The position numbers were made by a program, and so were the translations under genes. Below, one piece after another: positions 3,348 to 55,244 of a stretch of DNA of 64,000 nucleotides. Each line of letters starts with the position of its first letter. The stretch's first letter is position 1. Source of the DNA: Macrostomum lignano (lineage: Eukaryota); the NCBI GenBank assembly GCA_002269645.1, contig NIVC01000029.1:1302001-1366000 (forward strand), given 5' to 3'. The notes below the pieces were generated by a model. That model saw only the letters and a list, made by a program, of their open reading frames with translations, ran no database searches and was not told where the DNA came from.

Positions 3348-3419
3348 TGTTGCTGCTAGGCTGGCATGCATGCAAATTAGGGAGCGAATCCGGGGTTTGA
3401 GGCTATTAGTCTCGGTTTA

Positions 3420-7300: not shown

Positions 7301-9105
7301 GTGGCGTGCATTGGCATGTAATTGGGTATTGCATGCCAAAAATGGCACATTGGCATGTTTTGGCATAGAATAGCTAGCATAGAATGTGGCCAGGCGTGAT
7401 AGTAGGTCATGTTTTGTTGAGACAAAAGTTCGTGAAAAGACATGGTCTTGTAAAGACAAGAAGTCATACTTATTTTTATTGCAGAAGGACAAACAAATTT
7501 AAATGTGCCAAAAAGAAATGTAATAAATTTCTTTTTGGCACTTTTGCATGTTACAAAAGTTTTTTTAAATGTTGAAGACAGTTTTTTTGAAGTGCATTTT
7601 TCAGTTGTTAAAAGTTAAAAGTTAAGTGTTTTTTTCTATAACATATTAGTTTGGCGTGCATTTGCTTGCCATTGGAATGTGTATCTACTTGGCACTGGTG
7701 TGCATCTACTTGGCACTAGTGTGCATCTACTTGGCACTGGCATGCATCTACTTGGCACTAGTGTGCACTGGTTCAAAGCATTCCAGTATGCATTCAACAT
7801 GATCTAGACTATGGTGCTAACTCCTTGATGCACACTATGTACATAGTCATACATGCGCAATCTCCAAAATTTGGTCGGCCGTGCGACTTAGTTTTAAGAA
7901 AAATGCGACATAGTTTTTGGCCAAAAATGCGACTTACATGTAAAAAAACCCAAAGCAAAATTTATGCAATTTGAGTAAACGGCAGGAGTAACTATGACTG
8001 TCTTATTAAGCAAAAATGCCTCGTCAGCTAATTAGTACTACTTCGGTATTTTTGGGTGGGCATTTTTGCGACTTCCTTGGTTGGCCGCCAAATTGGTTGG
8101 CCGGATTGGCTGACTCAGCCGACTGTTACGCATGTATGTACATAGTACTAGAGTTGCCTAGGACATGACATTGTTGCAATAATTTTCCCCTAGAAATAGG
8201 TACACTCTTTGGGAGTATAGTATTCTAGAGACTAGGCCTATGTATTTTTGGATAAGCCTAGCTTTTGAATAACCTATAGGCCTTAGTCAATAGAGTATTA
8301 TTGACAATTAGGCCTACAATTATTGATTAGGCCTCTTGTTAGTAGTCAAAGCTTTAGTTAAGAATTTAAAAACATAACAATGGTCCTTTTACTTCTCTCT
8401 ATACCCCAGAAGCTAGAACACTGAACAGTCAATAGTAATTTTAAGAGGTTAAAATTTATTTCTCTTTGCATAAGCTAATTTAGAACAATGCCTGTATTGT
8501 GGCCACCTTAGTGTGGCTGGGTTTTTTTGTCTATAACTTGGGTGCAATTTCGCACCCTGTGCTAGATTTCAGGGTGCAATTTTCAAGACCAGGATGCGCT
8601 GCACTGCTGCAGACAAAAACTGGTCTAACACTAATAGTGTGTTTCAAAGTATGTCCATAAGACGTACTACAGATGTTCATAACACTAAATTGTGAAATCC
8701 GCATCACATCCTTGCAAAAAAATTCGTGTGTGCTTTTTGCACCCTGAGTCAAATTTCAGGGTGCGATTTTAAGACCAGGATGCTATTCGCACCCATTCGC
8801 ACAAAAAAACCCATGTGTGTGGCCACCTTAGTCTTAGACATGCACCATCTAATCCAAGTTAGCAGTAGTGTCATCTACAGAAAAAAGTGAATATTTTGTT
8901 ATGGTATGATTCTACATTAATACTGAAACTATAAGAAAAATATAAGGTGTAAGCTAAAAAAAAAAACAAACTATTAAAGTAAAAAATATCATACCTTTAA
9001 GGTTTTTAAAATTTCTCCACAACGATTTAAGTCACAAGAGTTCCGCTCCCACTCCTTTCTAAGAAGCTCATAGCTTTTCGCAACGGTTGCAATGCTGCCG
9101 GACAT
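4372..9105 (-). CDS. PSMD8: 26S proteasome non-ATPase regulatory subunit 8 (Rpn12); exons 9105-8995, 6554-6482, 5346-5054, 4695-4372; 266 aa
   Basis: [37 protein letters not shown] / [10 protein letters not shown]...QELLIAR / NTLEIGAL...[15 protein letters not shown]...[10 protein letters not shown]...[16 protein letters not shown] / VFLSK...[17 protein letters not shown]...[13 protein letters not shown] introns, phases consistent. Confidence 0.96.
4772..5040 (+). mobile_element. tRNA-derived SINE family A, degraded copy in a PSMD8 intron
   Basis: Near-identical blocks shared with 23711-24072 (GATTCCAAGTGCAGTCACATTAATT...GCCAACCCCCCAAGGC...GTTAGGGCCGCTGTACAC). Confidence 0.85.
5385..6386. 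repeat. 20-bp minisatellite (ATCTGACACTCCTGAATACT), ~50 copies, PSMD8 intron 2
   Basis: Tandem periodicity is directly visible. Confidence 0.97.
7678..7770. repeat. Short 22-bp tandem repeat (GCATCTACTTGGCACTGGTGT-like), ~4 copies
   Basis: Directly visible. Confidence 0.8.
7848..8138. mobile_element. hAT-like MITE, 291 bp
   Basis: 13-bp TIRs (CATACATGCGCAA / TTACGCATGTATG, 12/13 match) flanked by a perfect 8-bp direct repeat TACATAGT (7840-7847, 8139-8146). An 8-bp TSD is typical of hAT. Confidence 0.75.
8518..8813. mobile_element. MITE-like element with 13-bp TIRs
   Basis: TGGGTTTTTTTGT / ACAAAAAAACCCA inverted ends; internal duplicated ATTTCAGGGTGC..TTT.AAGACCAGGATGC; a nearby 15-bp direct repeat TGTGGCCACCTTAGT on both sides. 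Confidence 0.5.
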
Positions 9106-9505
9106 GTTTTTCATATATTACGCTACGTGTTTTAGACAATTTTATAGGTAAATACAGCACTGTCACTTTTTACAGGGTAAAAGAAACGATTTCTGGTAAG
9201 AGCGAGCGCACAGTACGGTAGTGCGACAGTTTATTTAGCAAAATTTAAAAATAATAGCTCAACAAACGTTAAAACAAAAGCATCTATATTTTTGCATTAA
9301 ATAGTAAAGTGCTGCCTAAATAACATAAAATTAATAGTATTTTGCAAATTTTAGTGATCAAAAGTTGATTAACTTGCAAAATTAAACAGCAAAATCTGTT
9401 TATAAGTGAATATCTAAGACATTTTTTAACTTTTTAATTTCTCTTTTTTCTTTCATTTTTGTTTCAGCAAAAGTGCTAGATTTCAATCTTTGTGACACAA
9501 GTGAC
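9106..9505. promoter_or_regulatory. Compact divergent (probably bidirectional) promoter region between PSMD8 and the ERICH3-like gene
   Basis: Only 400 bp separate the two head-to-head start codons. No specific motif was identified. Confidence 0.55.
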
Positions 9506-12500
9506 ATGGCAAAACCAGAAACTGGGTATGTTTTATGCATTTAAAAGTATCGGTCCTCACTTTTTGTTTCAAATAAATATTTAGAGTAAAAGCTCGACTT
9601 CAAGTTCATTTATTATTGCCATATTTACAGTATTTACCAGTTGTGAATTACCACAAGTTTCTTTTACAATTACAAACAAATTGGTAACTTCAGGAACTTC
9701 ACTAACTGTCTATCACTGAATTACTCTAATCTATAAAATTATGTAGAAATTTCGGACCATTTAGGCGCTTTTACTTGCATGTATGAAGTGAGTAAAGACA
9801 TGCATAAGTTAGCTGGGGTGTAAATTTTTACCGACAGATCGAATAAATCGCACTTAATCGTATGATCATACTTTATCTATATTCACAAATCTTTTATAGT
9901 ATAGGGAAATTTATTTTGTATTATACTGCTATTAGCTATTTACGAGCGTATACACTAGTACATGACAAATGTTAGACTCGACTTAATCAACTTTATGGCC
10001 GATTGCCTATACGAAATTACCCTTTTTAATAGTACAGGTCGTGTTGCAACGATACCAAAACTTTTTAATTAAGATTTGGCTTTCTTTTGAAGCTAATTAC
10101 TCTTCTGAAATGTATCAATTAAAATGTCCAGTCCAATTTATAGAATTTTACTAGCAATCTTCGCCCCCCAATGGGGGACATCTGGATAGAATCTTTGTTA
10201 TTTACAAGTAACAAATAGACAACGAAAAAACAACAGACATTTCCTCTAAAAGAAAACATCCCTACACAGCAAGCAACCCCTGACAGCATGCAAGCATTTC
10301 CCAGATTGCAAGCAAGCTTGCTTTCGATCTAACTTATCATTGCCCAATTCATCTATGACTACCCTTTGCTTTATTTCTTTTTCAATACGTTTTTTAATAC
10401 AACTAAAATTAACTGACATTCTGGGTGGATAAAGAAATTACATTACATTGCATTACGTTAAATAACTATCCCGAAATTAAACAGTATAAATATACTGTCG
10501 ATTTTTAGAGGGTTTATTCGGAAATTGTGTTCCTAATTTTTTTCCTTTTAGTAGGCTTTAATGAGAGTCATTTGTTTCTTTTTCTTTTTAGTTTTTGTTC
10601 ACTGATTGTAATCGTAATAATCGTTTTTAATAAACGAATTCGTTTCTTATAAACAAAAATCTTACATATTTTAGGCCTCTGGCCCAGTACAACAGCCTGA
10701 AGGATGAGCACCTGGCTGGCTACTTTAATAACAGAGCAAAGTGGCGTCACCTGGTCAAGGCTGGCTTGGTATGGCTTGGATTTATTTTAAGTTTTTAAAC
10801 GAAATAGTTTTTAAACGCTATATTTTTGCTACCCACACAACTACTCAACCAACCAGATCACTCGAACTGGCGAAGTCGTGCCCGAGCCAGTGTACAGGCT
10901 CAAGATGGCCCGAAAAGAGCACAAACGCCACGTGAGGGACATGCTTGCCCAGGCCATTGTGCACAAGTCGCTTGATCTCGAGCGCAAACGTCAAGTCGAT
11001 ATTCGACGCAAACTGGAGGAGATTGCCAAAATGGAGCACGTCAGGCGAATCAAGGTGAGATTAGAGACAGAAACAGGACGCAGTGTTATAAAGCACTACT
11101 TTTCAAAAGTTAATTTTCAAGACAGTAGTAGTTATAGCGTCAGGCATACTTCTTTATTAGAGGCAGAGGGCTGTGTGGCGCCCTGATGCACTTTAAGCGA
11201 CATTGTCATACAACCGGTGACAGGCATTACTGCCCATTCCGCCGACGTCCCTGAGCAGGCACATACGCGTACCGGCACACCCTCACACAGGAGTGTACAG
11301 CGGCCCTAACTTTATTTATCGTTAGGCATGTACTCTTTACTGTGCCTTGGGCCGGTTAGCCCTCAAGGGCGTTAATTTCACGACCAGAACCAAGCCCAGA
11401 TTCCAATTTAGCCCCAAGTTAACGTGACTGCACTTCGTCATATCGTCTTCAATCTTCTGTTACAAATCAACTGAAAATGATAGGTGATGACGTCATGCGT
11501 ACAGGTCTGTGCAGTGGAAAGTATCCATTTTCCAGCGAAGTCGAAAGATGTTGGAAAAGTGGGCCGACGTCCCTGACGTCGGGTTGATATACTGGTCCGT
11601 TACTGCTATATACCTCTATTACAAACTCTAATTCTATTCCCGGGGTCGCACACCGCAACAAAGGGTCAGGCTAGGCCAGAAGATCGCGGCGGTCTACTGG
11701 CGCACCTGACGCCCACCAGCTTGGCGCAGGTTACGGCCCAAGCCGCAGCCAACTCGACGCTCTCGGCCGGTCATCACGACGGACGGCGTCTCCAGCTGCG
11801 TCAGCAACGACGTCAAAACTCGCCACCTCTGCCACAGTTGCTGCTTGACACGCAGCGTAGTAGCGCCGCATCCAGCGATGTGTCTTCGCTAATTAGCGGA
11901 GATCAAGAGCGTCTGCCGAGGCGTTTGGTACTGCAGAAGATTCTACAGTCAATTTCAGTTTTTAAATTCACCATTGTATTTATTTACTGCTTTTCGTCAA
12001 TTTACTTTGATTTGAGGGATAGCGGTCAGTCAGCACAGTCATCCCGTTGAAAATTAAACGTTTTGAGTTTGATTTTTTATCACCTTGTCACTCATTTTCA
12101 TTCGTAATCCAAAGACAATCTGTCAATTGATTTTTGTCACTCGTCAGTTAAGAAGCTCCACAGGACTTCGATATTGTTGTTTCTCCTATGACGTTTATGA
12201 CGTTTATCTATGCTTTCTACTAAAATATTTCCAAACAGAACGAACGCAACCGCCGCGGGGACGAAGACCTGATGCCTCTGCTAGACCCAGGAGCTGCCAC
12301 GTCGTCTGGCATTCGCCGTAGAAAGCAGCGACCCAATCGGATTGGCGGCGATGCCGAGGAGGGCGACGGAGACGAAGAGGTAATTTAGTTTGCGTTTGTG
12401 CGAGGATAAGCTGAGTACTAATAACGCTTACAATGCAAGCATACGTGAAATCAGCGTGTGAAGTCGCCTGGTTAACTGATAACTATAACAAGGCCTCCTC

Positions 12501-13695
12501 GAACCTCGAAAACTTTCCCAACTTCAGCCGGAACCGTCGGGCCTTCCGCCGCACCCGGACACCGTGCAGCGCCGACGACTTCGTCGCCAATTTCCTCGGG
12601 CAGAGATCGATTCGAAGCATCTGCTCACTTTGGACAGCGTGGCGCTGCAGGAATACGCCAACATTCTAGAATCAATGCGTCGCAACGAAGCTCGAGGCGG
12701 TGGCGGTGGTTCGAATCTCAGCTCCCATCGGGCCTCCTCGCAGCCTCGTCGACGTAGCGCCGGTAATTCGCCATCGCCGGGACGTCGGAATCGTTCGCGC
12801 AGCGGCCGGCCAAAATCGGCTGCAAGACCGGGAGCGGCGGCGGCTCGTCGGGACTCTGATGACGACGACGTCGAAGATCTGAGCGACGAAGGCGAAGTTG
12901 AAGACGAGAAGCGAAAGAAAAAGAGGGGTGGCAAGTCGAGGGTTGGAAGACTCCGGCTGCATAGGGCCGAGCCAGCGCTCGACAAGCAGGCCTCCTACCA
13001 GAGCCTCTGCAAGGTGACGCTGCACTATTACGGTCCGGCGCTGAAGATACCGCACGACGGGCCTGGCCATGACGGCCAAGAGGTGACGGTGATGCAGCAG
13101 CACTCTGGCGGCAACACGCTCCGGGTGTTCTACGGACTGGTGAAGCCTGGCGGTGAGTTAATGATTAACTAGTGAAAGGCGAAATTCGAGACAAAACATT
13201 GGCATATCCTCCTAACAACTTCTACTGAGGATCGCCCCTGTAGTGGTCCGTTAACAAACTAATCGACAACTACAATTTTCAGAGGACTTCACATTCGTGA
13301 GTCGGCGCCATCGTGGCTACCCGTTCTCGTTGTCTCTTTACATCGACGGCGTGATGGACTCGAGGGTGAGCGCCTGCTGCGAGTACAAGCACAGGACTGG
13401 CGTGAGACTCGGCTCGAAGACCGGCCACTTCGGTTTTGTCAGCGTGTCCGAGGCGGCGCCGTGCTACAGGTGGGTGCTTGAAGTGCTTCAATTACTTTAC
13501 TGTTTTAAAACTAATGTAGTGTAGCTACTTGCGTCATTGTAACTGAGACGCTTGTTTTGTAATGTTTTATAATTCAAAACTAAAACACATTACAATTCAG
13601 ATGCCAGGTAGAGGAACAGCTGAAGGAGGGACGCGGCAAGAAAGAAAAGGCCAAGAAAGAGAGCACTTCTTCTGGTCGAAGGAAACCGCAGAAAA
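9506..13695 (+). CDS. ERICH3: ERICH3-like N-terminal region and DUF4590 domain (part of the large gene)
   Basis: PLAQYNSLKDEHLAGYFNN...HLVKAGLITRTG...MLAQAIVHKSLDLER and QQHSGGNTLRVF...FVSRRHRGYPFSLSLYIDG...SACCEYKH...RLGSKTGHFGFVSVSEAAPCYRC match my recollection of ERICH3/C1orf173 motifs. Confidence 0.9.
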
Positions 13696-16600
13696 GTGAG
13701 TCACTAATTAGCTCGTAAGGATCTACGAAACAAAGTGCGAACGACAGAGGCTGAGCCTCCTTAAAACCCTCAATAACATACAAATCCAAATCTTAATACG
13801 AGTCGTGGTTTAAAAAATTTAAAGTCAAGTAAAAACCACTAGCATTTACTGGTAACTAGGCTAAAAATTGGCTAAATAACCACCACACAGTATTATCTAC
13901 TCTCAGTAGGGTAACAAGAGTTTAAGATCAGGGACAGTAACTACATAAAAATAACTTTGTTCTACACTAAAAATATTGCAAACAAAGAAGCCGAAGATTC
14001 GACGCAAGCCGACAGAGACCCAAAGGAACCGGAGTCATCGTTGAACCCTCGACCTGACGGTCAAGCTGTGCCGGATTCAGAGCATCCGCAGGATAGTGAG
14101 CCGTCAGTAAGTGCGCCGGCACGCAAGGAAGAAGAGGTGCCGCTTGTAGAACAAGAGGATACAGCAATGCCAAAGCAGACAACGGAGGAGGAGGCTGAAA
14201 AGGACACTTTACAGGAACCAGTGGAAATACCGTTGGACGACACTGATACAGGCAGCGATACAGACAGCGATACAAAGAGCAAAACTAACGACAACAACAA
14301 CTTGAACGTTGTCGAGCAATCAGATAACAACAATGCAGCCGTCGAAGGTGGGAACTCGGCAGTTAGAAAAACGCAGTTCTCACTATTTCACCTATGGAAA
14401 TTGTCGCGTCAAAAATTGTTCACAAAATACTCTTGAAATTAAATTGAGCATTAGAATCTCGTTGATCCAACTATGAGTATAGTATCTAGCATGCGACAAT
14501 TGGAATTACAAAATGTCACTTGATTTACTTAATTCACTGCGCCACTTCATCTATCAAATTGAATAGAAATCTACATTATTGCGATCGTAAATTTGCTAGT
14601 AATTCATTTCACGCTGCCACAATGAAGATGATTTACGCAATGAATAATTGTTAGATCAGTCACCCAGGCGTGCCGAGTCCATTGCTGTCTTATTTGCTTC
14701 GTGGAAATAATTCTACAATCAGAGGCATATATGGATTCTCTCTGAGGAAGAATATATTAGCTATCATATTGCGAATATTTCGAACAATCTAGAGGGCTGA
14801 GAGCGGATGAGAAATGTGCATCTCTCGATGCATATGAGCACCTGTTCATATGCATAGAACATCTGCATACAAAATCTGCTATCCTTAGCAAGCCAGCGTC
14901 ATTTTCCAGGAATATCTTATAATACGATTTGAAGATAGAACCGAGCTTAGATCGAGGAATAAAAGAGTCAAAAGTTCACAAAAAATTGGCCCGTTGTATG
15001 ATTCGCGTCTTTGAGGGCCCTCATATTGTCAAATTGTGTGCATGCTTGGCTAAACCAGGAACGCTGTGCATCCTGTATGAACGTGTGCCTGCGTACCTAT
15101 CTGTGCTTATGGGATACGAGCTAGCATGACTTCCTGCCTCCTCGCTGGCACCTACCTAACAAACAAAACAACTGACATCCCGCTTGGACAACTTCCAACT
15201 GCTTCCAGAAGCAGCAACAGTTGCTTCTTCATCATCTGGCTCAGCCAGTCATCGTAGTCGACGAAGTCGTCACAGCTCGATGTCGAAATCGAGCAGGCCA
15301 GTTTCGGCTAAATCTGGACCTCGTCCATCATCGGCCATGGCTGACAGAAAGCCACCTGCGTCAGGTAGTAAATCATCGACAATTCGAGAAAGCTCGCTAG
15401 AGTCTTTTGGATTTCCTCTCTTTCTCGATGTTGTGGCTGTCTGTCTATCTACGAGTATTTGATAAATACACTTTATAGTTTCATTTAATTTTTATAGCTG
15501 TCCTACTACCTGTCTATTTATTAGCGAAATCGAAGCAAATTTTTATAAATTAACACTGCAATACTCGTAGCGAGCTGAATGACTCGCTGAGCTCACAAAC
15601 TGATCAGTTGTTTCCAACGCAACCAATAAGCGATGTCGACATCCCTATGATAAACAACCAATGGTAAAGTAATTTCCGATCATCCAGCCAATGCTAACCA
15701 ATCAAATGGCCTATGAATCTCTCACATGCTCGCATGGCCATATTTATTCGATTTTTGATCCATTTGTTTATATCGCGAAATACTTGGACCGCGTAGCAAG
15801 CATGCTGCCTTGCCAGAAACTGGCTTTAGTGAGGCAGCTGGTGCACCAGGCGGCTCTATTCCATGCTAGTCACAATTCAACCAGCCAGTGCAGCAATGAC
15901 AGTCGCAATCATAATGCCACCATTTCGACTTCTTCTGTTCAACTAAATTTACAACAGACCACTAAACTAACCGTCCGATGTTGCATTTCAGCCTACGACG
16001 ACGACTTCCAGGACGATTCGGACCATGAGAACCGAGACAAGCGATCCGGTGAGTGATGACTATTCTACTGATTAGCTTTAAACATTGTAGCAGTCGATAA
16101 GGAGGCCTTACAGTCCCTAAATCGTAAAAGAAATTTAGTCCGCTCATAATCAAGCAAAAAAGGATCTCTGGCCGGACTAACCCGTCCGCAAATACTCCGA
16201 TGCGAGATCATGCTTCTCCATAATTCTCTCGCTGAGCTCTGTCGTCTGTTTCTGTGTGTGCGCGTCTCCATCCCCGTTTCTCTTTCTGTTTGACCCAGTT
16301 AATAGTCTCAGGGATGCTCCAATAGAAGCCTTGATGAGAGGTCCCTAATGTCGGACAACAACTGCGGTGAATATAGCAGATGGTCCTGCAAGCAAAGAGA
16401 GAGAGAGCATGCAACGCATATGAGAGAGAGTTAAGAGAGAAAACTGAGATCATAGTCTCCCCTATTCCCAGCTGCTTTACTAACTGATCTATTCTGATCG
16501 AGAGTTAGATTTGAGTACTATAGCCGTCTTCATCCACATCATGGCGCATGTCGTAGACTGCACGTCTTTTTATGCTTCTTTACGGCATTTGTTTGCGTAG

Positions 16601-19600
16601 TTTCTATGCAGAGACAGAAATTAATCCAATTTTGCTACTCGATAATCTTTGCGAGAAGGTCCCGCGAGTCCAGAGATACGTTCACCCTGCAGATGGTTTT
16701 TGAGGGAACTTATTTCACTTTCATGATGCGAAGCATAAGCTTCCTAATTCAGATAACTTTCTTTTAGGATGAGAGGCTGAGTTGCTTAGCAAAAAGCGTC
16801 TGTCTGACGTTACGACCCCTGATTCGATTCAGAGTGTGGCCTCATTAATTTAAGGCTTGCGCCCGGACATTCGAGAAGGTTAATTTGTCATGCGATTACT
16901 AACCATGAGGGCCAACGCCCAAGTCACAGAGAGTGTACATATCTGACAGTTAAAAAGCCAGGGCCGATGTACACCCTATGTGAGCGTGTGTACGAGTATG
17001 AGAGCGTGTCTGCGAACGGTATTGGCGCGCTTGTGTGTGCTGAGGAGTCAGCAGAATAAGCAGAAATGCCTCAGATCTGGTTGTTGTGTTACGAGATCTC
17101 GCAAGAAGTTGCGCCGGGGTGCTCACGAGCATCCTTTGAGTGTGTACGAGTCATATATGCAAAGGAACGTATATATAACCTATATGAGGATACACTCGTA
17201 TTCGTCTAGGATACAAATTTGTTAGAATCCAGAGCAGATCATTTAGATATTGATATGCACTGTCTTGACTACTAATGCTTACAAATTCAATACTTCAACC
17301 TGCACTTGTAGACAAGGACTCCTCATCTTCTAGTAGCAGCCGAAGCCGCGGCACTAGCGTCAGCAGAAGCAGCAGTACTGGGAGAGAAAGGGTGGAATAC
17401 CAAGTGAAAATAGCGACCTTTAATGAGATCGGATCCGGCACCGAGGCCCCTGCCTTCATTGAACTTATCGGAAGTTCGGCTACTTCGAAAAAGTTTCCAT
17501 TAAAGCAATACGACAGCGCCACTACATTCGAGCGAGGTGCTACCAACGAATTTACGGTGAAAGCGCGCGAGGATCTAGGAGAGCTTACTGCAGTCAGGTG
17601 AGTGTGCTCATTTTTTTAATAATCAGACCGATTAGGTAGCAGGAAGATAGATTACGAATTTAAGTATCAGATTAAACATGCCTTTTGAGGGAGTTATTTG
17701 TATAAATCACGAGGGCCTGAGGCCCGAGGGATTTATGAAAATAACTCCCGAAAAAGGCATGTGTAATCTCGTATAAACCATAGACATAAAGACTTTACGG
17801 GATATTATTGAATATTACCAAATAAAATCCCGGAGAACGCAAATATTGCCACGGAAAGTCTTTATTTCTATGGATTATCGAATCGTTCCCTCTGGCAACG
17901 ATTCTAATTGTCCCACGTGAGAATGATGTTTTAACCATAGACTATGATTCGTTTATTTGTTTGTTTTAGTATTGGTTTTTGCGAGCTATCTCAGCCAAGG
18001 AGCAAGCAAACTCATCCATCCCATAGATTTCAATACGACGAAGGAGGTGGTTTGAACCATAGACTATCACGTTTTTTCAACCAAACTCATCCAACGGGCG
18101 AGCAATCTCAGCCATAGCTTGTCTGCCCATTCATTTCCTCTTCCCTTCTTTCTTTCCTCCTCCTCCGATGGCTCAGTTGTGTTCTGATGTGCTGCTCTAT
18201 CATAAAGTCTCTTATATACGAACCAATTAAATTTTTCGCTTAATAAACAAGCTATGGCTGAGATTGCTCGCCCGTTGGATGAGTTTGGTTGAAAAAACGT
18301 GATAGTCTATGGTTCAAACCACCTCCTTCGTCGTATTGAAATCTATGGGATGGATGAGTTTGCTTGCTCCTTGGCTGAGATAGCTCGCAAAAACCAATAG
18401 AATGCTGGTAGATTATTATATTCGTCTAGAAACATCTGACCTCGGAAGTGAATTCAACTCCATCTGAAGCGAGGTTGGTTAAGACCAAATTGATAAACTC
18501 TGCTTTGAAAAATGTAGTCAATGGAAATGGAATGGAATCAATGACAATGGAAGTTTAAACAAAAAGTATTATGGTAGGCAGTTGCATGGTCGGAAAAGAA
18601 TGGGGTTAAGCAATGGTAAGCGCCGCTTACAATCAGTCAGCTAGAAAATGTCATATTTAGCGACAGGGATTTATTTATGACGTTTAATTTTTTCAACTAA
18701 CCAAGATTCACCCCTACCCGAACACCTGAACTTTATAAAGACTTCATCTGGAGGACGGAGGCATCGGTTCCAGCTGGCGTCCTGAGTCGATCACTGTCTC
18801 GCGCGGTGAACAGCAATGGACATTCCCAGCTGGTCGCTGGATTGAGAAGAACGAGTGCGAGACTTTCACCGTTGGTAAGTGATGAGTGAAAGCAATATTT
18901 GCTAGCCTAAATATAAATATTAAAATAAATACGAGCGTATATGGATGTTTTTAATTGACTTTATTATAACTCCAACATTAGCCGTTATCCTGAGGGACCT
19001 TTGTAATCTTTAACACAATAAAACTGTTGTTTTTGTTTTGAAATTTCCTGAAATCGGACTTATTGATTGCACCCCGAATAACCATACTTCTACAGAAGAT
19101 ACCGCGGGTGAAAACGATGACGAGGTGTACGTCGTCACTATTCAAACCTCGTCGCAGGCCATGGCAGGCACGGACGCCAGGGTATTCGCCACGCTGGTTG
19201 GCGAGGATAGCAGGTCCAACCGAGTGCAGCTGAAAAACGACCGAATCGACTGCTTCGAACGGGGACAAACTGATCAGTTTAAAGCTAGATTTGGCAGCAA
19301 CCTGGGCGAAATTCAATCCATAGAGTGAGTTGTTGGACGTCTAATTTTTTCGTGTTGCCTCATTCAGTTAAGCTCTTGGTAGGCCAGCATGTCAAATTTG
19401 AAACTTTCCCACTAAATTCAAGGCTGGAGACGGAGGGCGGTGGCCTGACCAGCGGCTGGCTGCCCGAAACCATCACCGTGGCCAAGGGAGACAAAGAGTG
19501 GCGCTTCCAAACCGGTCGCTGGATTGAAAAGAATTCAATTGAGACCCTTCCTGTTGGTGAGTAAACGTACTCTTAGTTCGTATACAATGTCGATAACAGC

Positions 19601-22600
19601 ATTTTTGCTGTGCTGAAACAGCCATAACAATTATTTCAATCTGTAAGGGCATTCGGGCAGAAAATAGTTTACTAATGGGCCTCTACTCTCGTATTTGAGT
19701 AGTTTCAAGCTAATTTTGACTTGAGACGTGACTGCATTATGTTAGTAGTCTTGGCAAAAGAGCAAACGTCAAAACAAACATTTAATCTAATTTAAACTGC
19801 CGACGCGTTTCGTCCAAAGCGGACATCTTCAGGGCAAACGAATCATGTTTTCGATGGTTCGTTTGCCCTGAAGATGTCCGCTTTGGACGAAACGCGTCGG
19901 CAGTTTAAATTAGATTAAATGTTTGTTTTGACGTTTGCTCTTTTGCTAATTTTAAAGCGAGCTACATTACCACAGTTAGTAGTCTTGCATCACCATGCAT
20001 CATGGCTTAGATACAAGTATTATTCATTAAAATAAACGGTAAACGCTATTAACTTTAACATCAATATTTGCCTGTATTCTCTACAACGGAAATCCGGTTT
20101 TTCTTCACAACAGTCAAAGACGCTACTGGTGAGGACGACGGCGACGCAGTCGATGCCAACGAACGCCGCTTCACCGTGACAGTGAAGACCGGCGATCGCA
20201 TGGGCGCTGACACTGACGGCCGAGCAACAATTCAACTGGCTGGCACTGAGGCCACCTCGGAGCAGATTTCCTTGGAAGAATTCCGTCAGAACAAAGACGG
20301 TCGTTTGTATAGACGCGGTCAAGCTGACAAATTCAACATTCAGGCTAATAAGCAGCTTGGCGATTTGAAGGCTATCGAGTAAGTTCTTGTGATTTAGCTA
20401 TTTTAAGTAACTGACACGAACTCTCCAACCTGGAAGGGGGTTGTAGCCTGGTGGTTAGAGCGTCAGAATCACGACTGAAAAGTCAGGGGTTCGTATCTCG
20501 ACCCACCTGGAACAATTTGTGTCCTTGAGCAAGACACTTAACTCTGCATTACTTTAGTTCACCCAGCTGTAAAATGGGTGCCAGCATTAGCTGGGGTAAT
20601 TGAGGCTGTGTGGCGACCCCCCCCCAGTCCTTGGACTGAACAGCCGTACGCAGCCTTCAGATGCACCGCGCAATAGCTGCGGCTGAGCTGTCGGTTGCAC
20701 ATTAGGCTCTTAGGTCTCTTAGGTTGGCGCCACTGTCTCTTAGACTGGCGCCACTGTCTCTTAGGTTGGCGACAGTGTCTCTTAGACTGGCGCCACTGTC
20801 TGTTAGGTTGGCGCCACTGTCTCTTAGACTGGCGCCACTGTCTCTTAGGTTGGCACCACTGTCTCTTAGATTGGCGCCACTGTCTCTTAGGTTGGCGCCC
20901 CTGTGTCTTAGGTTGGCGCCCCTGTCTCTTAGGTTGGCGCCCCTGTCTGTGAGGTTGGCGCCACTGTCTCTTAGATTGGCGCCACTGTCTCTTAGATTGG
21001 CGCCACTGTCTCTTAGATTGGCACCACTGTCTCTTAGGTTGGCGCCCCTGTCTGTGAGGTTGGCGCCACTGTCTCTTAGATTGGCGCCACTGTCTCTTAG
21101 GCTGGCGCCACTGTCTGCGAGATGAAGTTCTATATAAGAATGTCCGTCGTCTCGATAATGAATATTCGGCATTGAAATTATATTTTTACGAAAAGCATCC
21201 TGACTCAGCTGTTGAATCCCCGATGCTATGGAAGTACAAGTTCTATACTCATTTAAACCTCTCCATCATCAAATAATCAAAATCAGTCTTGTCAGTTTTA
21301 ACGACATTAATTATTATGACATTAAAGCTCCAACCTTTGCTATGTCTCACTACATTCAGGTTGTACATCGAGGGCGGCATTTCAACCGATTGGTACGTGG
21401 AACGCGTCATCGCCGAGCAGAACGACAAACGCTGGGAGTTTCCATTCGAGCGTTGGATCCAAAAGGAGCGACCCGAGCGTTGCGCCGCGGTGGCCGCTCT
21501 GCCCGACAGAGCTGACGACGATTCGACTAGGCAGAAAGTAAGAGATTGCCGGTGCTTTCATTGTATAGTGTTCAATTAGATTAAAGTGCAAAATTCAAGC
21601 CCCACAATGGCTTCATCAATCATTGCTTTTTCAGCGCGCATCAGGTAGCAGCCGATCTGATCGTTCAGACGACGAAGAAGTTGTCAACTTCAAGATAGAA
21701 GGCTCGCCTGAGCACGCAGCTCCAGGTGAGAAAAGTTTTTGTTTTGTTTTCAAAAATATTCGGTAAAAAGAGTCCGTTTTATTTTTGTCCTAATGTGTGT
21801 AATGTCCAGCGTATGGCACAACATATCGGTATAGAATCAGTTGAATTCCGTCCCACGAATGGCAGGCTTCTGCACACAGTGGAAACCGTCGCTGATGGGG
21901 AGCCACAGCTTCGACCTTATTTCCAGACCATTTCTAATTTTTGTCACCATTTTTGCAAGATTTATTACTAACAAAGGAGGCAGAGGCGAGGCAGAAAAAG
22001 TGCGAATCAATTTCATTTAATCCTTCGAGCATTCTTCCAGCCAGTGCAAAATATCGATAATTTACTAATTACTAGAATGAGTTAGCTATAATGAGCGCCC
22101 CGAATAACCTTGAACTAAAAATAACCGAATTCAAAAAAAGTCGCACGACCGAAACTCGACTCCGATGACGATGATGCGGACGAGTTTGAAAAGGACATTG
22201 CCGCCGCCAGGGCAGTGCTGCTTGGCGATAAGAAAGGTATTTCGACACTAAAATATCTACCGGACGATTCAAACACTTTACTGTTTTAATTGCCTATTCT
22301 GCACAAAACAACTTTATTTGCACCGGAAACTTTTCTATAAAGCTTTTTATTATATTTATCTATTTGTTTGTGCCTTTAAAAGCTTTTTCAACACTTTCAA
22401 AAGAATTTTTTCAACATTTTCATCTATATGTACTCTTACTACTCGTACTTGTATAAACTTTTGCAAGAGTTCAGACGAGTAACTTACGCTTGAAAATTTA
22501 TATTCATCTAAATTTATTTATTTATACGTAAGAATATTACAATTTTAACAAACAAAAACGTATTGATAATTTAACTTGAATCAAGAATTGATTATAAAAC

Positions 22601-25600
22601 TAAACGGGATTTTGTTTTTTTGTTCGAGTTCTCAAATATCACATTTCCTTTTGCCACGTCACTCTTCAATACTCACCGTTTCTTTGATTTAATTTCGTTC
22701 ACAGATCAGCAAAAGAAGTCAGCCGCTGTAGGTGTCACTGAAGTGCCAGTAGATGATGCCCCAGACGTTGGTAAATCAAAGTTTTCACATTTTATCAAAA
22801 TTTTCCTCTTGCGCTTTCGCAAGTATATTCTTTGAGAATGATAACTCTGCGTACTTATACTCTATTCTTTTTCAGAAGATTCTCGAAACACCCAATCGAC
22901 TTTGGTTCGCAAAGGTTAGTAAATTACGAACGAATATTTATACGCTATTATTTAGCAAAATTTGGTAGGGGGTTGTAGCCTTAGTGGTTAGAGCGTCGGA
23001 CTCACTGCTGAAAGGTCTGTGGTTCGATTCCTGATCCCATTCGAACAATTTGTGTCCTTGAGCAAGAAAATTGCTTCAGTTCACCCAGCTGTAAAATGGG
23101 TGCCAGCATTAGCTGGGGTAATTGAGGGTTTGTGGCGACCCCCCAGTCCTTGGACTGAACAGCCGTACGCAGCCTTCAGTTGCGCCGCGCAATAGCTGCG
23201 GCTGAGCTGTCGGTTGCACATCTGCCTATTGGGGCACGTGTAGTCATTATTATCATTTACCAACAGCTAGAAATTCAGGTCATACAAAACACAATTGACT
23301 AGCATATTGATACTTCTTACTTCTTTTAGAAGAGAAGCGAAGGCGCGTTTCTGGAAGCGATCGCGGTTCCTCAGGCGAAGACTCTGGTATGAGCGCTGTA
23401 TTTAATATCGAAGTTATTAAATCGAATGTAAACAATTTTTTTACACTGCTTCTTTTCAGATGCCGACTTAAAAAAGAAAGGTCACATTCAGACCAGGATT
23501 TCAAGCTTTTCAGAGGAGTCGGATTCTGGTACGCTCTAATTACTGTCTAGACAAGTTGTTTTGTATATTGCTGATAAGAGTCGCTGGCAAGTTGGTCTTT
23601 TAAAACTACGCCGACGGATGATGACGCTACACAATGTCCTTATACGTAATTAAAAAGTACCTCATTTGCCAGTGAACGTCGATAAACATCGGAAACATCG
23701 ACTTGACGTTATCGGGGGCCGTAGCCCAGCGGTAGCGCAGATGCTCTGGTGTGCCAGCGACCCAGGATCGATTCCAAGTGCAGTCACATTAATTTGGGGC
23801 TGAATTGGAATCTCGGCTTGGCTCTGCTCGTGCAATTAATGGCCTTGAGAGCCAACCCCCCAAGGCGCAGTGAAGTGTACATGCCTAACGATAATATAAA
23901 GTTAGGGCCGCTGTACACTCCTGTGTGAATGTGTGCTTGCGTACGTATCCGCGCGCTTGTATGCCTGCTCAGGGGAGTCGGCGGAATGGGCAGCAATGCC
24001 TCTCGCCGGTTGTGTGCCTATGTCGCTTAAAGTGCGCCAGGGTGCACACAACCCCCTGTTTCCCAATTAAAAAAACATCGACTTGACGTTGACGACGTCC
24101 AATTGCTGTACGGATGAATAAAAAGATTGTTTACTCTAATTCGCTCCACAAAAATGCAGGCTCGGAGGATGAACGTGACCAAGAGCCGGCTACGCTACAA
24201 ATACGGCCTTCCAGCGACGAGGAAGATGAAAGCGAGGAAGAGGAGAATCAGCGATGGAAGGAAATGGAGGCTTCGCGTAAGCGCGAAGAGGAAGACCGTA
24301 AGCGCGAAGAGGAAGACCGTAAGCGCGAAGAGGAGGCTGCTGCTGCTGCTCAAAGGCGAGAAGAGGAGCGCCGGCAAGAGGAAGAGGAAAAGCAGAGGAA
24401 GCAGCAACAGATTCTGGAAGATCAGCTGGACCGTATGCGTCAAGAGCAGCAGGCAATTAAGGAGAAAGGTAAGTTAAAGTTCGAAACTTTGGCCCATACG
24501 AGCAAATGAAAGCAAGAAAATCCCACAAATTCGGCTGAAAAGAATTTGTCTACCATTTTTGTCTGCAATTATTAGGCCTATGCGACTACAAAATACGTTT
24601 TGTGACGGATTCGACGGAGGACGCTGGCACTCACGCTACAGTGTCTATCGTTCTGTGCGGTGAACAAGGTGACTCAGACGTCAGGACGTTTAAAAATGAG
24701 CAAGGCAGAAAGTTTCAGAGTGGCAGGTAATACGAAATACTTGTATTTTTTGGTTTTACCTTACCCTTATTTGTAAAAGCATATTATTAATCTTGAAAAT
24801 TTTCAGTACTTCCGAGTTCTCCATCAGCATTCCCGACCTGGGTGCCATCAATAAAATACGAATTTTTACCGACGTGCAGTATGAGCAAGACAGATGGCTG
24901 CTCTCACGGGTGAGACAACTTGGGAGAGAGTGATGATTTTCGTGTCTGTGTCAATGGTTTTATTAGCGTATGCTTGTCAGTGTGGCCTATTTTCCAATAA
25001 GCATTTTCATTATTTCACTCCTTCACTCCTTCATCCCGTCATTAGATCATCAGCTGTCAGATTAGTACCATATTTACAGGTTGAAGCTCGTGTTAAGATT
25101 ATATTAGTGCCCATAACCTGCATCAAATCTCAATCTTACCAGGTGGAGGTTGAAGATCAACAGCGCGGGGTGACGCGCAGCTTTCCCTGCGGCAAGTGGT
25201 TCACCAGGGACTGCGATAGTCACATTCTGCTGGCCCCGCCAACCGACGATGAAGTGTCCCAGCATGAAGAGTCGCGACCTTCGTCCGCTCGTCAGGCGGT
25301 GCCGACGCTGGCTGCACCACCCACCGCTGCCACCACAACTACCACTGGAGCGACCACCACCTCCACGGGCGATGCAGGATCCTTTGGAAAGCCATCGACA
25401 GCGGCTAGCGGCACATCCGCCACCGCTCAATCGTCGGATACAGCCAGCACTGACGAATCGGAGCAGAGCGATGACGTCAGCAGTACGGCGGAGGAATCCA
25501 GCGAAGCTGACAGCGACTCGTCCGACAGCGAGTCCGACACAGAAACAGCCGGGGAAGATGATGAGGCTGCCGAGTCTGTGCCCAGACAGAACCGAATGCG

Positions 25601-28600
25601 TAGCGGATCTGTTCAACCGGACGACATTCAGCCTCCGGAGACTCGGGTTGGAAAAGTGCGCGATCTGTTCAACGATAATGGGGTCTCTGTATACGATACA
25701 AAGCTATCGGATGAACAGGTGAGCCGCGATTATCAGATAAATCCGTGTTTTGTACCTGTTTTTTGAAAAATCCATGAAAGAAAACCTAGTCTAGCGTATC
25801 ATTGCAAATGAACTTACAGTGCTTAGTTTAAATTGTATTTTTTCAAGTTCTATAGTCTTGTTCACTACTTTTTTTCATTAAAAGTCAACTACTGCACCAT
25901 TTACTCGGTCAGTCAATGCTAGACGGCCACTTCCAAATAAGTGCTTGACTGTCTACATCCGTACAGTGTACACAAGTGTATAGTACTCACAGTAGTGACC
26001 TATGGAAAGCGTAGACTAGCTAACAAAAACTTCGCCACACATTTTATAAACGACATTCCGCAGACGGTGAGTTGACACTTCTCAGTGGAGTCTTCACTGC
26101 ATGCACTCTGTTCATTTTCAAGTTTCACTGCCGTTCAAGTGAAGCCTATATATTTACATCTTGATCTGAACGTTAGCATGCTTTTTCTTAGACTTTCCAT
26201 AGATTATTCACATTGTTTTACTTATCTTTTTGTCTTGAAACGATGTACTGATGTCAAACTGTCAAAGCTTTACTCTGTTGACGTGAGCCACTAAAAACGG
26301 AATCAATTATTCCTTTTTGCGGCCCAGTTGGCACTGCAAGCTTTCAACTTAATCATAGACACGGAAATCAGGCTTGCGGGACTAAAATTTTTCTGTCTAT
26401 GGTCGACACTCGCTGGCATAGCGGATTTCAATTTGGTCCTGGGGGCATCAATTTGATCATTCTATGTTTTCAATGCACATTTTCACTGTCATCGTAACTT
26501 GTTTTTAGCTTGTCTTTTACATCATATGATCCTCGGACAGACTATGATGGCATCCAGGTTCCAGAAGTTCATCAATGATCTGGTGCAAAGCGTGCATTGC
26601 CGCCATACTCACCGTTCCTCAATCCTGTGGAGAACGCGCACGCCTGCCTGAAGGCAGCCAAAAGCCAACTGGCTCAACCACAACTGCAAGAAGAGCTGGA
26701 CACTCCGCCTGATGGTCATTCGCTACGAGAGTGGCGAATCCTTGTCCTACAGAGCTGGTTGCAGGGGAAGCGAAGTTTGTTTCAACACCGGATATCTAAC
26801 GTTATATGATTAGAATGATCCAATTGATGCCCCCAGGATTGGGTTGAACTCCGCTATGCCAGCGAGTGTCGACCATAGACAGAAACATTTCAGTCTCGCA
26901 AGCCTGATTTCCGTGTCTATGATTAAGTTGAAAGCTTGCAGTACCAACTAGGCCGCAAAAAGGAATATTAGATCGGAGCTTTCTCGAGTACAAATTTGAG
27001 ACGAATTAACCGGTTGAGCCGAAGGCATTGCAGAATATTACACAAATGTTTTATTGCACATCTAGAACCATTTTTTCTCGTTTAAAAATCTTGCATACAT
27101 ATATTTATATATTTTTTTTAGTATTTTTTATTTTACTTTATTATGAATTTAATGCTTTAAAAACGATTTATTCGTTTTTATGCTTGTGTTTTTTTAGTTT
27201 GTTTATAATCCAAAGTACGATTAAGAAGTAAGTAACTAGGTTAACATATTTAAGTTCATGACGTACTCATATTCTGGAAAAGTTCTATGTACATGTTTAC
27301 AAGTTAAAGACGATTATTCGCTGTAATAATTCGAGTATATTTTACACTTAGATCTTAGTTAAATGCAAATTCTGTGGTCTCGCAGGATATTGAGAATACT
27401 CAAACTACCCGACTATTACCCGCAGTTCGAACTCTTTCTCAAAGAGCTCAATCAACGCGAGAAAGCCGAGAAAATGGAGTCGGTTTCTGTGCGCAACTGC
27501 CAGCTGACGGACAGTCAGGCTATCCGAATGCTCGAGGCTCTTGCAGCCTATGATAAATTGAACTACCTGAACTTGACATGCAACTCCATCAGCTCACGAA
27601 CTGCGTCCGTCATCGCCGAGCGCCTGTCCGGTTGGCCTCAGCTTTCTAATCTCAACTTGCACAGCGTGGCCATCGGGGACGACGGCATCTACGCACTTGT
27701 CAAAGGATTGAGAAACAGATTTCGAACCAACTCGTCAACTATCGATACGGTGAGTAGCGAAATAATAATGTGCAGATACATGCAAACAAGCACGGTCCTA
27801 TTGTCTTTTCAAGACATCTAAGAAAGCTCTTAAACCGCAGCGTTTCTTAGAAAATGTTAAGGAGGCTGGTTTTCGCGGAAAAATACACTACGGAGAGAGA
27901 AAGTTTTCATTTTTCAGCACAAAAATTGTTATTGCTTTTGATACGAGCGTAGGAGGCAGACCCAATGGTCATCTTTTGATATGCTGTGCCTTCCTTATGG
28001 CTTCCTTATGGAACCAAAGATTCGAGCTGTGCCATGCATTTTTATGATTTTAACGCACAGGAAATGTACTGAGAATAAAAAAATTTAGTCAGAATCCTAA
28101 CTTTCCAAAAGAAAGGCTTCATGAATATCAATAGAGCCATAAGAAAGGCACAACATATCAAAATATGAACAATGGGTCTGCCTCCTATCGAAAGCAATAA
28201 CAGTTTTAATATGAAAAACATGAAAGCTTCCTATCTCCGTAGTGTATTTTTCCGCGAAAACCAGCCTCCTTAACATTTTCGAAGAAACGAGGTTTCGCGT
28301 CCTTCTGCTTGACGTTTACCCGACGTTATAATGTCGTTGTCCGCTACCCTGATGACCAGGTACTTGCCTACTGTCATTGCAGATTGACCTGGGAAACACC
28401 GGCATGACAGACCAAGGCCTTCAACAGGTGGCCGGTCTACTGGCCGAGAATCCACCACTGGCCGGACTTGAACTCACCGGCAGTCGGGGCCTGTCCGAAT
28501 CTGCGTGGGCCAATTTGGGCAAATCGCTGCGAGGCAACACAAAACTCGAATCCATGATGCTGGACTATTGCGACCTGACCGACTCGAGCTTGGCTGCTCT

Positions 28601-28796
28601 GCTAGACGGTCTGGGCTCGAATCTGAGCCTAATTAGCATCGACCTAGAGGGCAACCGGCTGTCGGACCGAGCCTGCGACCTCATCGCTGACAGTGCCGTC
28701 CGAAATGGCCTGAGAAGCGTCAGCTTAGAGATGAACGGCGGCATCAGCGACCGGCGCAAGGAGGCGCTTGAGGTGCAACTGTCTGAGAAGAATTGA
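9506..28796 (+). CDS. ERICH3/DUF4590 - 4x PLAT - ER/K helix - LRR multidomain protein (~1871 aa). Exons: 9506-9525, 10675-10768, 10857-11054, 11670-11927?, 12239-12379, 12528-13152, 13283-13469, 13601-13695, 13988-14347?, 15209-15364, 15992-16048, 17312-17597, 18741-18874, 19096-19324, 19423-19556, 20114-20378, 21360-21537, 21635-21725, 22705-22770, 22876-22914, 23330-23386, 23460-23528, 24160-24468, 24576-24726, 24807-24909, 25143-25718, 27426-27749, 28383-28796
   Basis: All 27 introns are GT-AG, phases are consistent, and the exons sum to 5616 nt (1872 codons). Exons 4 and 9 have weak acceptors. A single transcript is inferred from phase continuity, not from RNA data. Confidence 0.75.
11160..11435 (-). 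mobile_element. SINE family A, 5'-truncated copy
   Basis: Reverse complement of the body and tail of 23711-24072. Confidence 0.8.
16783..17135 (+). mobile_element. Older, diverged relative of SINE family A
   Basis: Colinear patches (GGGCCAACGCCCAAG, AGTGTACAT, AGGGCCGATGTACAC, GCGCGCTTGTG, AATGCCTC, TGCGCCGGGGTGC) resemble family A; B-box-like GATTCGATTC. Confidence 0.55.
17312..21537 (+). CDS. Three tandem PLAT/LH2 domains (part of the large gene)
   Basis: Y.V.I.T....GSGT.A..FI.L.G...S....L......FERG..D.F.V....LG.L..I and W.PE.I.V....W.F...RWI motifs are repeated three times. Confidence 0.88.
17677..17765. repeat. Imperfect ~85-bp palindrome (CATGCCTTTT...GGGCCTGAGGCCC...AAAAGGCATG)
   Basis: Arms are directly visible. 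The Crypton-like appearance is from recollection only. Confidence 0.7.
17970..18399. mobile_element. Foldback MITE with perfect 153-bp inverted arms (17970-18122 / 18247-18399), a 124-bp spacer and TA at both ends
   Basis: The reverse-complement match was checked by eye along the whole arm. Confidence 0.85.
19798..19836 (-). ncRNA. Identical minimal hammerhead ribozyme on the opposite strand
   Basis: Exact reverse complement of 19864-19902. Confidence 0.85.
19864..19902 (+). ncRNA. Minimal type I hammerhead ribozyme (predicted cleavage after GUC, C19898)
   Basis: UGCC-CUGAAGA-U-GUCC(GCUUU)GGAC-GAAA-CGCGUC-GGCA: core boxes, 4-bp stem II, 4-bp stem I and palindromic ACGCGU stem III, as in PLE-associated minimal hammerheads. 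Confidence 0.85.
20437..20703 (+). mobile_element. tRNA-derived SINE family B with a CORE-like central domain
   Basis: A box TAGCCTGGTGG, B box GGTTCGTATC; GTGTCCTTGAGCAAGACACTTAACTC...CTGTAAAATGGG resembles the CORE-SINE consensus; second copy at 22968-23260. Confidence 0.85.
20704..21118. repeat. 21-bp minisatellite (TGTCTCTTAGATTGGCGCCAC), ~20 copies, directly at the SINE tail
   Basis: Directly visible. Confidence 0.95.
22968..23260 (+). mobile_element. SINE family B (CORE-like), second copy
   Basis: A box TAGCCTTAGTGG, B box GGTTCGATTCC; body nearly identical to 20437-20703. Confidence 0.87.
23711..24072 (+). mobile_element. Full-length tRNA-derived SINE family A with an 18-bp TSD
   Basis: A box TAGCCCAGCGG, B box GGATCGATTCC, A-rich end; perfect TSD AAACATCGACTTGACGTT at 23693-23710 and 24073-24090. 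Confidence 0.92.
24576..25240 (+). CDS. Fourth PLAT domain, split over three exons (part of the large gene)
   Basis: DYKIRFVTDSTEDAGTHATVSIVLCGEQGDS...FQSG / STSEFSISIPDLGAINKIRI...WLLSR / VEVED...FPCGKWF. Confidence 0.8.
26310..26965. mobile_element. Non-autonomous IS630/Tc1/mariner element with ~155-bp TIRs, TA TSD and a transposase remnant
   Basis: Inverted arms 26308-26464 / 26811-26967 bounded by TA; internal LPPYSPFLNPVENAHACLK (26597 onward) is the C-terminal DDE motif of this superfamily. Confidence 0.85.
27426..28796 (+). CDS. Ribonuclease-inhibitor-type LRR domain, LRRC73-like (C-terminus of the large gene)
   Basis: Repeats with ~28-aa spacing: SVSVRNCQLTD, YLNLTCNSIS, NLNLHSVAIGD, TIDLGNTGMTD, MMLDYCDLTD, SIDLEGNRLSD. 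LDY and DLEG placement recalls LRRC73. Confidence 0.8.
27841..28289. mobile_element. MITE with ~150-bp imperfect TIRs; TTAA followed by GG suggests Kolobok-like
   Basis: GAAAATGTTAAGGAGGCTGGTTTTCGCGGAAAAATACACTACGGAGA and its exact reverse complement at 28234-28280. Superfamily assignment is inference. Confidence 0.75.
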
Positions 28797-31775: not shown

Positions 31776-32494
31776 GTAGAGATGTTAGTAGCTTATTTGA
31801 TTTTAAATCTCTCCATCTGTTAAATATTTGTGTGTTTGCACCAAGAATGCTAACAAGCCCCAGATGATTGACTCGCCTTAAATAAAGAAAGTGCATATTG
31901 CCCTTATTACGAAAATTACTATCCTCTAATATACTAGATAGGCATCGCCCCAATGCAGCTGAGTACACTACAACCAGTTAATAATAATACATCACCATGG
32001 AGCAGTTGATGAGTAAACACACAATCCTTGACTATATGGTCTTCTACAAATAGTGCTCTTCAATCATCCCTTGACTTCCCATTCTCTCCCAGCTTTTTCG
32101 TCCGCTTACGCCTGCGGCCTGTCAAGTCCAATAAGCCAACTATAAATAGCAACCAAAATCACGGACAGACTGTGAGAGGTCGAAAAAATGCTTGGGAATT
32201 ATTTTACATTTGCCTTATATAAACACAGTTAGGCGGAACTGCCGAAGTTCCGCTCAGATTCTTGGCACAATTGTTGGAGATCGGCAGGTCTCTATAGCGA
32301 GAATTATGCCCAATATCTGTTTCTAAATATAGAATATTTTAGTGCTTGAGTATAGACTGAATTGATTCAGCGCCTCTACGGTATATTGATGATTTGAAAA
32401 GAGTATAATATAAAGCTTGATTAAGGAAGCTTATGACATTATGATTTACATTCAAAAGGAAAAAACATCTTTTGCACATTTTATATATTTTACC

Positions 32495-45905: not shown

Positions 45906-55244
<9,339 letters not shown>

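Follow-up and report, generated by a model that had tools for sequence, protein, structure and literature searches.

Gene model of the ERICH3-like locus

The DNA analysed here is a stretch of 64,000 nucleotides (nt) from the flatworm Macrostomum lignano (contig NIVC01000029.1 of assembly GCA_002269645.1), hereafter the window. On its plus strand we identified a gene of the ERICH3 family that encodes, in order, an ERICH3 N-terminal region, DUF4590, four PLAT domains and a C-terminal leucine-rich repeat (LRR) domain of the ribonuclease-inhibitor type. A Pfam scan of the stop-free plus-strand segments between 9.5 and 28.8 kb recovered DUF4590, PLAT four times and LRR_6. The gene model was built with two M. 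lignano proteins as guides, the annotated BOX15_Mlig011659g1 (P0001) and a fragment from an older, independent annotation (P0002), and canonical splice sites were required throughout. The resulting core model of 4842 nt is in frame with no internal stops, and all of its introns (24/24) are GT-AG. The main features, all on the plus strand, are as follows (aa, amino acids).

9506-28796: ERICH3-like gene, whole coding region; 25 core exons, 1613 aa, ATG at 9506, TGA at 28794-28796
9506-12256: conserved ERICH3 N-terminal region, aa 1-110; exons 1-4 (part)
13077-13628: DUF4590 (PF15257), aa 335-431; exons 5-7; Pfam E 2e-38
13988-14347: optional acidic exon, 120 aa, phase-symmetric; in P0002, not in P0001
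15209-15364: possible optional Ser-rich exon, 52 aa; keeps the frame; alternative acceptor at 15245
15992-16048: exon 8 with the YDDDF motif (15994-16008; aa 455-459); splices to exon 9
17395-18873: PLAT1, aa 501-612; exons 9-10
19125-19555: PLAT2, aa 623-733; exons 11-12
20167-21492: PLAT3, aa 752-866; exons 13-14
21635-24468: exons 15-20, linker of low complexity; 24246-24467 is rich in Glu and Arg and predicted to be helical
22141-22236: weak optional exon; keeps the frame
24584-25235: PLAT4, aa 1095-1207; exons 21-23
25143-25718: exon 23, uninterrupted; C-terminal half of PLAT4, a Ser/Thr/Asp/Glu-rich tail, and the first beta-strand and start of helix 1 of the LRR domain
25647-28793: LRRC73-type LRR module, aa 1345-1613; end of exon 23, exon 24 (27426-27749) and exon 25 (28383-28796)
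25719-27425: intron 23, 1707 nt, with a transposon remnant inside

The three optional in-frame exons extend the model to 26-28 exons and 1733-1817 aa. The Ser-rich exon was present in none of the annotated transcripts examined, and the linker exons 15-20 gave no Pfam match. An earlier reading made from the sequence alone (the sequence-only reading) had placed the start and the end of the gene exactly, and its 28 exons are reproduced once the three optional exons are added to the 25 of the core. Its estimate of ~1870 aa was about 50 aa too long, as the fullest model here has 1817 aa.

The best database match of the assembled product is P0001 (1654 aa, partial at the 5' end), with 97% protein identity (1578 identical positions in a global alignment of 1625 columns). 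The locus of P0001, on contig NIVC01000842.1 of the same assembly (L001), shows the same order as the window throughout, also in the introns and the upstream neighbour genes, with 95-98% of nucleotides identical. On this evidence the window gene is a second copy or haplotype of the annotated M. lignano gene, which fits the reported redundancy of this genome (PMC5730564). The two copies share the architecture, the exon junctions and the upstream neighbours (RPL4 and a CSN8/eIF3K-like gene). They differ by point changes, one extra EEDRKRE repeat in P0001 and intron indels, and the deposited model is without the acidic exon. The same M. lignano architecture is thus already deposited in GenBank.

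A single gene

The ERICH3-, PLAT- and LRR-coding parts are one gene, and the fusion is not a mis-merge. The single fused gene proposed by the sequence-only reading is borne out by the continuity of the reading frame, by exon 23 and by the deposited model. Because exon 23 encodes both PLAT4 sequence and the first LRR strand, the link between these two domains needs no splice prediction. The end segment of this exon, GVSVYDTKLSDEQ, aligns with the conserved start of the LRR domain in ERICH3-like proteins of other phyla (alignment A1). In the AlphaFold2 (AF2) model the first LRR beta-strand is GVSVY (25680-25694), and helix 1 begins at DEQ in exon 23 and goes on as FELFLKEL... in exon 24. Intron 23 therefore divides the first LRR unit, which would be incomplete without the exon that also carries PLAT4. 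The junction itself joins donor 25718 (CAG|GTGAGC) to acceptor 27426 (CCCGCAG|TTC) in phase 0. Further upstream, DUF4590 is connected to the PLAT domains by splices from 13695 to 15992 and from 16048 to 17312, the second of which (exon 8 to exon 9) is in phase 1; exon 9 encodes a Ser-rich linker and the first half of PLAT1.

Published annotation agrees with this model. The M. lignano annotation derives from genome-guided RNA-seq assemblies, which TBONE divided into genes at spliced-leader and poly(A) sites located by experiment (PMC5730564). In it DUF4590, the PLAT domains and the LRR lie in one gene, with junctions identical to those of the window model. Fragment P0002 crosses both critical regions, from the acidic exon through YDDDF into PLAT and from PLAT4 into the LRR.

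Might two or three head-to-tail neighbours (ERICH3, a LOXHD1-like PLAT gene and an LRRC73 orthologue), perhaps in a trans-spliced operon, have been merged by a fortuitous splice fit? M. lignano has many polycistronic, trans-spliced units (PMC5730564), an ATG at 27363, straight after a stop, opens into the LRR frame, another at 17275 opens into the PLAT1 exon, and intron 23 is long, with an acceptor that is merely moderate. Nevertheless, we regard such a merger as highly improbable, given that PLAT4 and the first LRR strand have an exon in common, that helix 1 crosses the junction, that the boundary-aware annotation kept the locus as one gene, and that the same unbroken N-to-C order recurs in ~8 phyla, including a transcript-like contig and a compact genome. 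The sequence past the donor of exon 23 points the same way, as its coding potential is not conserved between the two M. lignano copies. If donor 25718 is ignored, the frame runs for 15 codons to a stop at 25764-25766. This read-through tail differs between the copies by 15.6% mismatch and three frameshifting indels, and exon 23 by 0.7% mismatch and one 3-nt indel; by this comparison the tail behaves as intron, although introns are likewise 95-98% identical between the copies, so that exon-versus-intron divergence is weak overall and informative only at this tail.

A related possibility is that the fused form is real and that the locus also yields shorter products (LRR-less, stand-alone LRRC73-like or PLAT-skipping). 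Alternative use of the acidic exon (in P0002 but not in P0001), the 1-1 phase of each of exons 16-20, which makes them skippable, and the many isoforms listed in RefSeq for orthologues would all accommodate this. An LRR-less end has a candidate signal, ATTAAA at 25877, ~110 nt past the read-through stop, and a stand-alone LRR protein could use the ATG at 27363 as an alternative start, since 27363-27425 is an open reading frame (ORF) of 21 codons into the LRR exon frame that is open in both copies. However, an open stretch of this length has a chance expectation of ~1 in 3, with which the candidate start is fully compatible, and a product begun there would be without the conserved first LRR strand. 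The frameshifting indels in the read-through tail count against the LRR-less form, and none of the transcripts examined supports any shorter product. We thus consider additional short products unlikely.

N-terminal region and DUF4590

The N-terminal ~110 residues are 48-64% identical, from residue 1, to ERICH3 proteins of sponge, placozoan, cnidarian, mollusc, echinoderm and vertebrate. DUF4590 follows with a Pfam score of 131 bits (cut-off 27). Shortly after it stands the motif Y[DE][DE]DF, which occurs in 52/71 DUF4590 proteins, vertebrate ERICH3 included, and then the acidic low-complexity body. The product thus has the sequence features of the ERICH3 family. Vertebrate ERICH3 (C1orf173) has the same N-terminal region, DUF4590, a YEEDF motif and a Glu-rich disordered body, but is without LRR and without PLAT among the vertebrate sequences listed.

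The AF2 model of DUF4590 (pLDDT 77) is a seven-strand beta-sandwich followed by a helix. Alignment A2 shows an invariant His/Cys pattern (QQHCGG ... CCEYKH ... PCYKC) that is suggestive of metal binding. The first Cys, nearly invariant in the alignment, is replaced by Ser in both M. lignano copies (QQHSGG). A fold search with the model found no significant neighbour; the best was a C2 domain (E 0.012, template modelling (TM) score 0.34), and as this match is non-significant we do not claim DUF4590 as a relative of C2 or PLAT. A sequence search of the PDB with the N-terminus and DUF4590 found no relative, and in the literature searched DUF4590 is named by a single paper.

PLAT domains

In the assembled product PLAT (PF01477) is matched four times (total E 3.6e-70). 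PLAT1-3 are mutual best matches (33-42% identity) and form one clade. Each is encoded by two exons with a shared phase pattern (start in phase 1, internal intron in phase 2), PLAT1 and PLAT2 also end in phase 1, and the flanking exons are in phase 1. The shared phases and the mutual similarity are together the mark of a phase-symmetric unit that was inserted and then duplicated in tandem. PLAT4 is the most divergent of the four and the closest to LOXHD1-type repeats. LOXHD1 consists of tandem PLAT repeats only (about 15). All four PLAT domains of the window are most similar to repeats of this type (30-38% identity), but unlike those of LOXHD1 they are inserted in an ERICH3 framework.

Among the listed ERICH3-like proteins, PLAT is confined to those of M. 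lignano (four domains), of scallops from three genera (two) and of the nemertean Tubulanus (one). The scallop PLAT domains form their own clade. Each embedded PLAT finds a better match among LOXHD1-type repeats than among the embedded PLAT domains of other lineages (111 versus 64 bits for Tubulanus, 72 versus 41 bits for M. lignano PLAT4), and in a neighbour-joining (NJ) tree without bootstrap the embedded domains of the three lineages are not monophyletic. These comparisons make independent insertions somewhat more likely than a single old one. The contrary history, in which the ancestral spiralian ERICH3 had a PLAT that most lineages lost and that diverged beyond recognition in the rest, has in its favour that the flatworm, the scallops and the nemertean are all spiralians, that the domain sits between spacer and LRR in each, and that all three lineages have a PLAT shortly ahead of the LRR. 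It must contend with the tree and the match scores just given, and with the listed isoforms of oysters, mussels, gastropods, Lineus and Dimorphilus, which have no PLAT; we hold it to be the less probable history, though a serious one. The sequence-only reading had also raised an ancestral unit of all three modules. A common ancestor of this kind is not indicated, as the PLAT domains fail to group across the three lineages. The insert of four PLAT domains represents a variant specific to its lineage.

The LRR module and LRRC73

When the two LRR exons were scanned alone, LRR_6 was matched at E 2.6e-6. The AF2 model of the module (pLDDT 93, pTM 0.90) is a horseshoe of the ribonuclease-inhibitor type with ~9 strand-helix units. 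Foldseek gave TM scores up to 0.80 against ribonuclease inhibitor, NLR and axonemal LRR proteins such as LRRC34 and DRC5, and an hmmsearch against the PDB supports the ribonuclease-inhibitor type. PF27087 was considered as an ERICH3-specific domain and rejected, as it is the generic 'LRR_TMOD-LMOD' family.

Database searches were swamped by generic LRR proteins and did not place LRRC73. A single-sequence search with the LRR module gave one irrelevant match, a profile search with A1 gave generic LRR proteins only, and the best 150 of an exhaustive representative search were giant multi-repeat LRR proteins only. Human LRRC73 (NP_001012992.1, P0283; sequence confirmed by exact look-up) was thus compared directly. 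Aligned with the family profile A1 by hhalign, it gave a probability of 99.8% and E 1.6e-30 over 253 columns. The aligned span, residues 3-259, includes the N-terminal strand and helix and the C-terminal 'N-x-I-S...I...L' cap. With LRRC73 as phmmer query, the best-matching ERICH3-like C-termini (mollusc and cnidarian) scored 78-110 bits end to end as single domains, and the other ERICH3-like members scored lower. The controls reached <=52 bits (162 generic LRR proteins drawn from the strongest database matches) and <=57 bits (whole-sequence, LRR chains of the PDB). A specific relationship of this LRR family to LRRC73 is supported but not proven by these alignments. They support the LRRC73-type assignment of the sequence-only reading, and its Rosetta-stone link between ERICH3 and LRRC73 gains support from the same alignment and from the fused invertebrate layout described below. 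Vertebrate LRRC73 is collinear with the C-terminal LRR family over residues 3-259, but is a stand-alone protein of 316 aa, whereas the module of the window is the C-terminus of a protein of 1613 aa. In the literature searched, no paper names both ERICH3 and LRRC73.

Distribution of the DUF4590 and LRR layout

More than 40 annotated 'glutamate-rich protein 3-like' proteins from ~8 phyla have both DUF4590 and LRR Pfam matches. The carriers are as follows.

Sponge: Oscarella
Placozoan: Trichoplax
Cnidarians: Actinia, Acropora, Xenia, Clytia
Echinoderms: Anneissia, Asterias, Apostichopus
Annelid: Dimorphilus
Nemerteans: Lineus, Tubulanus
Molluscs: oysters, mussels, scallops, Haliotis, Patella, Pomacea, Mya

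Six of these were re-scanned; in all (6/6) DUF4590 lies at about residue 250-420 and the LRR forms the very end of the protein. BLASTP with the LRR of the window retrieved ERICH3-like C-termini at E 1e-27 to 1e-8. A JGI contig of 5033 nt (L003) has an intronless ORF of 1407 aa with DUF4590 and LRR, as for an assembled transcript. In the compact genome of Dimorphilus, the one case in which conservation of intron positions was checked, the last exon encodes the whole LRR and ~90 upstream residues; it is preceded by an intron of 44 nt and, upstream of that, an exon of 512 aa.

The family includes Lineus longissimus (P0026), Oscarella lobularis (P0053) and Trichoplax sp. H2 (P0084), and, with PLAT between spacer and LRR, Argopecten irradians isoform X3 (P0016) and Tubulanus polymorphus LOC141909936 (P0038). 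Invertebrate ERICH3-like proteins have the N-terminal 110 aa, DUF4590, YxDDF, an acidic spacer and the ribonuclease-inhibitor-type LRR in the same order as the flatworm protein. Macrostomum differs from them in its four PLAT domains (versus 0-2), the triplication of PLAT1-3, a more divergent LRR (24-30% identity) and the QQHSGG variant.

The vertebrate ERICH3 proteins listed all have DUF4590 only, without LRR. Given the spread of the joint layout from sponge to nemerteans, the simplest reading is that the combination of DUF4590 and LRR is probably ancestral for animals and was lost in vertebrates. The sequence-only reading had entertained a lineage-specific fusion, and for DUF4590 and LRR this fails. 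Of the three modules these two prove widespread in combination, an outcome that the sequence-only reading had itself named as refuting, whereas PLAT is restricted. The backbone is known and widely annotated, though undescribed, and is neither new nor lineage-specific.

Other features of the window

Two introns of the gene contain inverted repeats. Intron 23 holds a DNA-transposon remnant (26302-26973) with inverted arms of 163 bp (26302-26464 and 26811-26973; 91% identical) and, in its interior, a degraded DDE_3 transposase tail (26579-26806, E 0.002); the remnant is also present in L001. Intron 9 holds a perfect inverted repeat of 153 bp (17970-18122 and 18247-18399, 124 bp apart), which could be a hairpin-forming element or an assembly artefact. 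Minisatellites are abundant in the window (units of 18-29 bp, arrays up to 3.5 kb), and account for strong blocks of GC and AT skew in the composition profile. Rfam and tRNA scans of the window gave no match. The remaining features are listed below.

285-9500, minus strand: upstream neighbours, the ribosomal protein L4 gene and a CSN8/PSD8/eIF3K-family gene, placed by collinearity with L001
20714-21116: minisatellite in intron 13
1788-2865, 5384-6385, 30296-31621, 32493-34011, 34867-37087, 46196-47213 and 49748-53276: examples of other minisatellites
38184-38528 and 41172-42308, plus strand: innexin gene, exons; the larger piece matches Pfam Innexin at E 5.6e-11
47200-48121, minus strand: exon for the catalytic domain of a 3'5'-cyclic nucleotide phosphodiesterase (PDEase_I, E 7e-85), adjoining a 1-kb (AGAT)n array
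57916-58573: assembly gap of 658 N
59122-59928: ORF of 269 aa upstream of the next feature, with no Pfam match
59961-62198, plus strand: ORF of 746 aa that combines reverse transcriptase with a GIY-YIG nuclease motif, in the manner of Penelope-like retroelements

Possible role in cilia

We consider it very probable that the gene belongs to the ERICH3 family and has the ancestral form found outside vertebrates, with an LRR that is the counterpart of LRRC73 and with PLAT domains acquired in the Macrostomum lineage. Several observations weigh against this assessment or against its extension to LRRC73 and cilia. The transcript support comes from the second copy, 95-98% identical, and not from this exact copy. 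The LRR of the window is itself divergent and scores 45.8 bits against human LRRC73, inside the generic LRR range, so the link to LRRC73 rests on the family profile. That profile gives LRRC73 152 bits, as against 145 bits for the top single domain of the generic proteins, a narrow difference obtained with a generic control set picked by total score. LRRC73 may have originated by fission or by partial duplication, either of which is compatible with the data. Finally, the literature search gave no expression or localisation evidence for the flatworm protein, and found Mlig011659 in no paper.

Both mammalian counterparts have been associated with cilia. ERICH3 localises to primary cilia and is abundant in airway motile cilia, and its loss leads to shorter cilia and disturbed levels of intraflagellar transport (IFT) proteins, ARL13B, BBS5 and the Hedgehog receptor (PMC6848114); within the family, such localisation and effects on IFT/BBSome cargo are known for the mammalian protein alone. 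LRRC73 stains motile cilia in five human tissues and is without functional annotation (PMC12772120). By analogy, the flatworm protein may also function in cilia.

The ancestral protein would have consisted of the N-terminal region, the DUF4590 beta-sandwich, YxDDF, an acidic disordered spacer and the C-terminal LRR horseshoe. In the Macrostomum lineage LOXHD1-like PLAT beta-sandwiches would have entered the spacer; PLAT1-3 arose when one two-exon unit was triplicated, and a fourth, more divergent PLAT stands just ahead of the LRR. We infer that such a protein could act as a long ciliary tether or adaptor. Its N-terminus and DUF4590 may engage the IFT- and BBSome-ARL13B-linked machinery reported for mammalian ERICH3, the PLAT domains may contribute contacts with membranes or partners (a role that such domains have in other proteins), and the LRR may bind another protein. 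A separate gene, LRRC73, would have arisen from the LRR module in vertebrates, and its product may still work with ERICH3.

A bolder form of this proposal is that vertebrate LRRC73 is the detached C-terminal module of an ancestral ERICH3, separated by fission or partial duplication in the vertebrate or chordate stem, that the two proteins still form a working complex in cilia, and that the spacer repeatedly recruits membrane-binding domains. We put this forward tentatively, and think it rather more likely to fail than to hold. If it is true, the PLAT inserts of flatworm, scallop and nemertean point to a tether between the ciliary membrane and the transport machinery.

The gene itself is ordinary, in that a model of it had been deposited before and its backbone of two modules is widespread. 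It is also a clean case in which a two-exon PLAT unit was inserted into a disordered spacer, in the manner of exon shuffling, and triplicated. The hypothesis for vertebrate cilia is a useful by-product: ERICH3 and LRRC73 are both poorly understood human cilia proteins, and the fused invertebrate gene offers the concrete and cheap hypothesis that the two bind each other or share one pathway.

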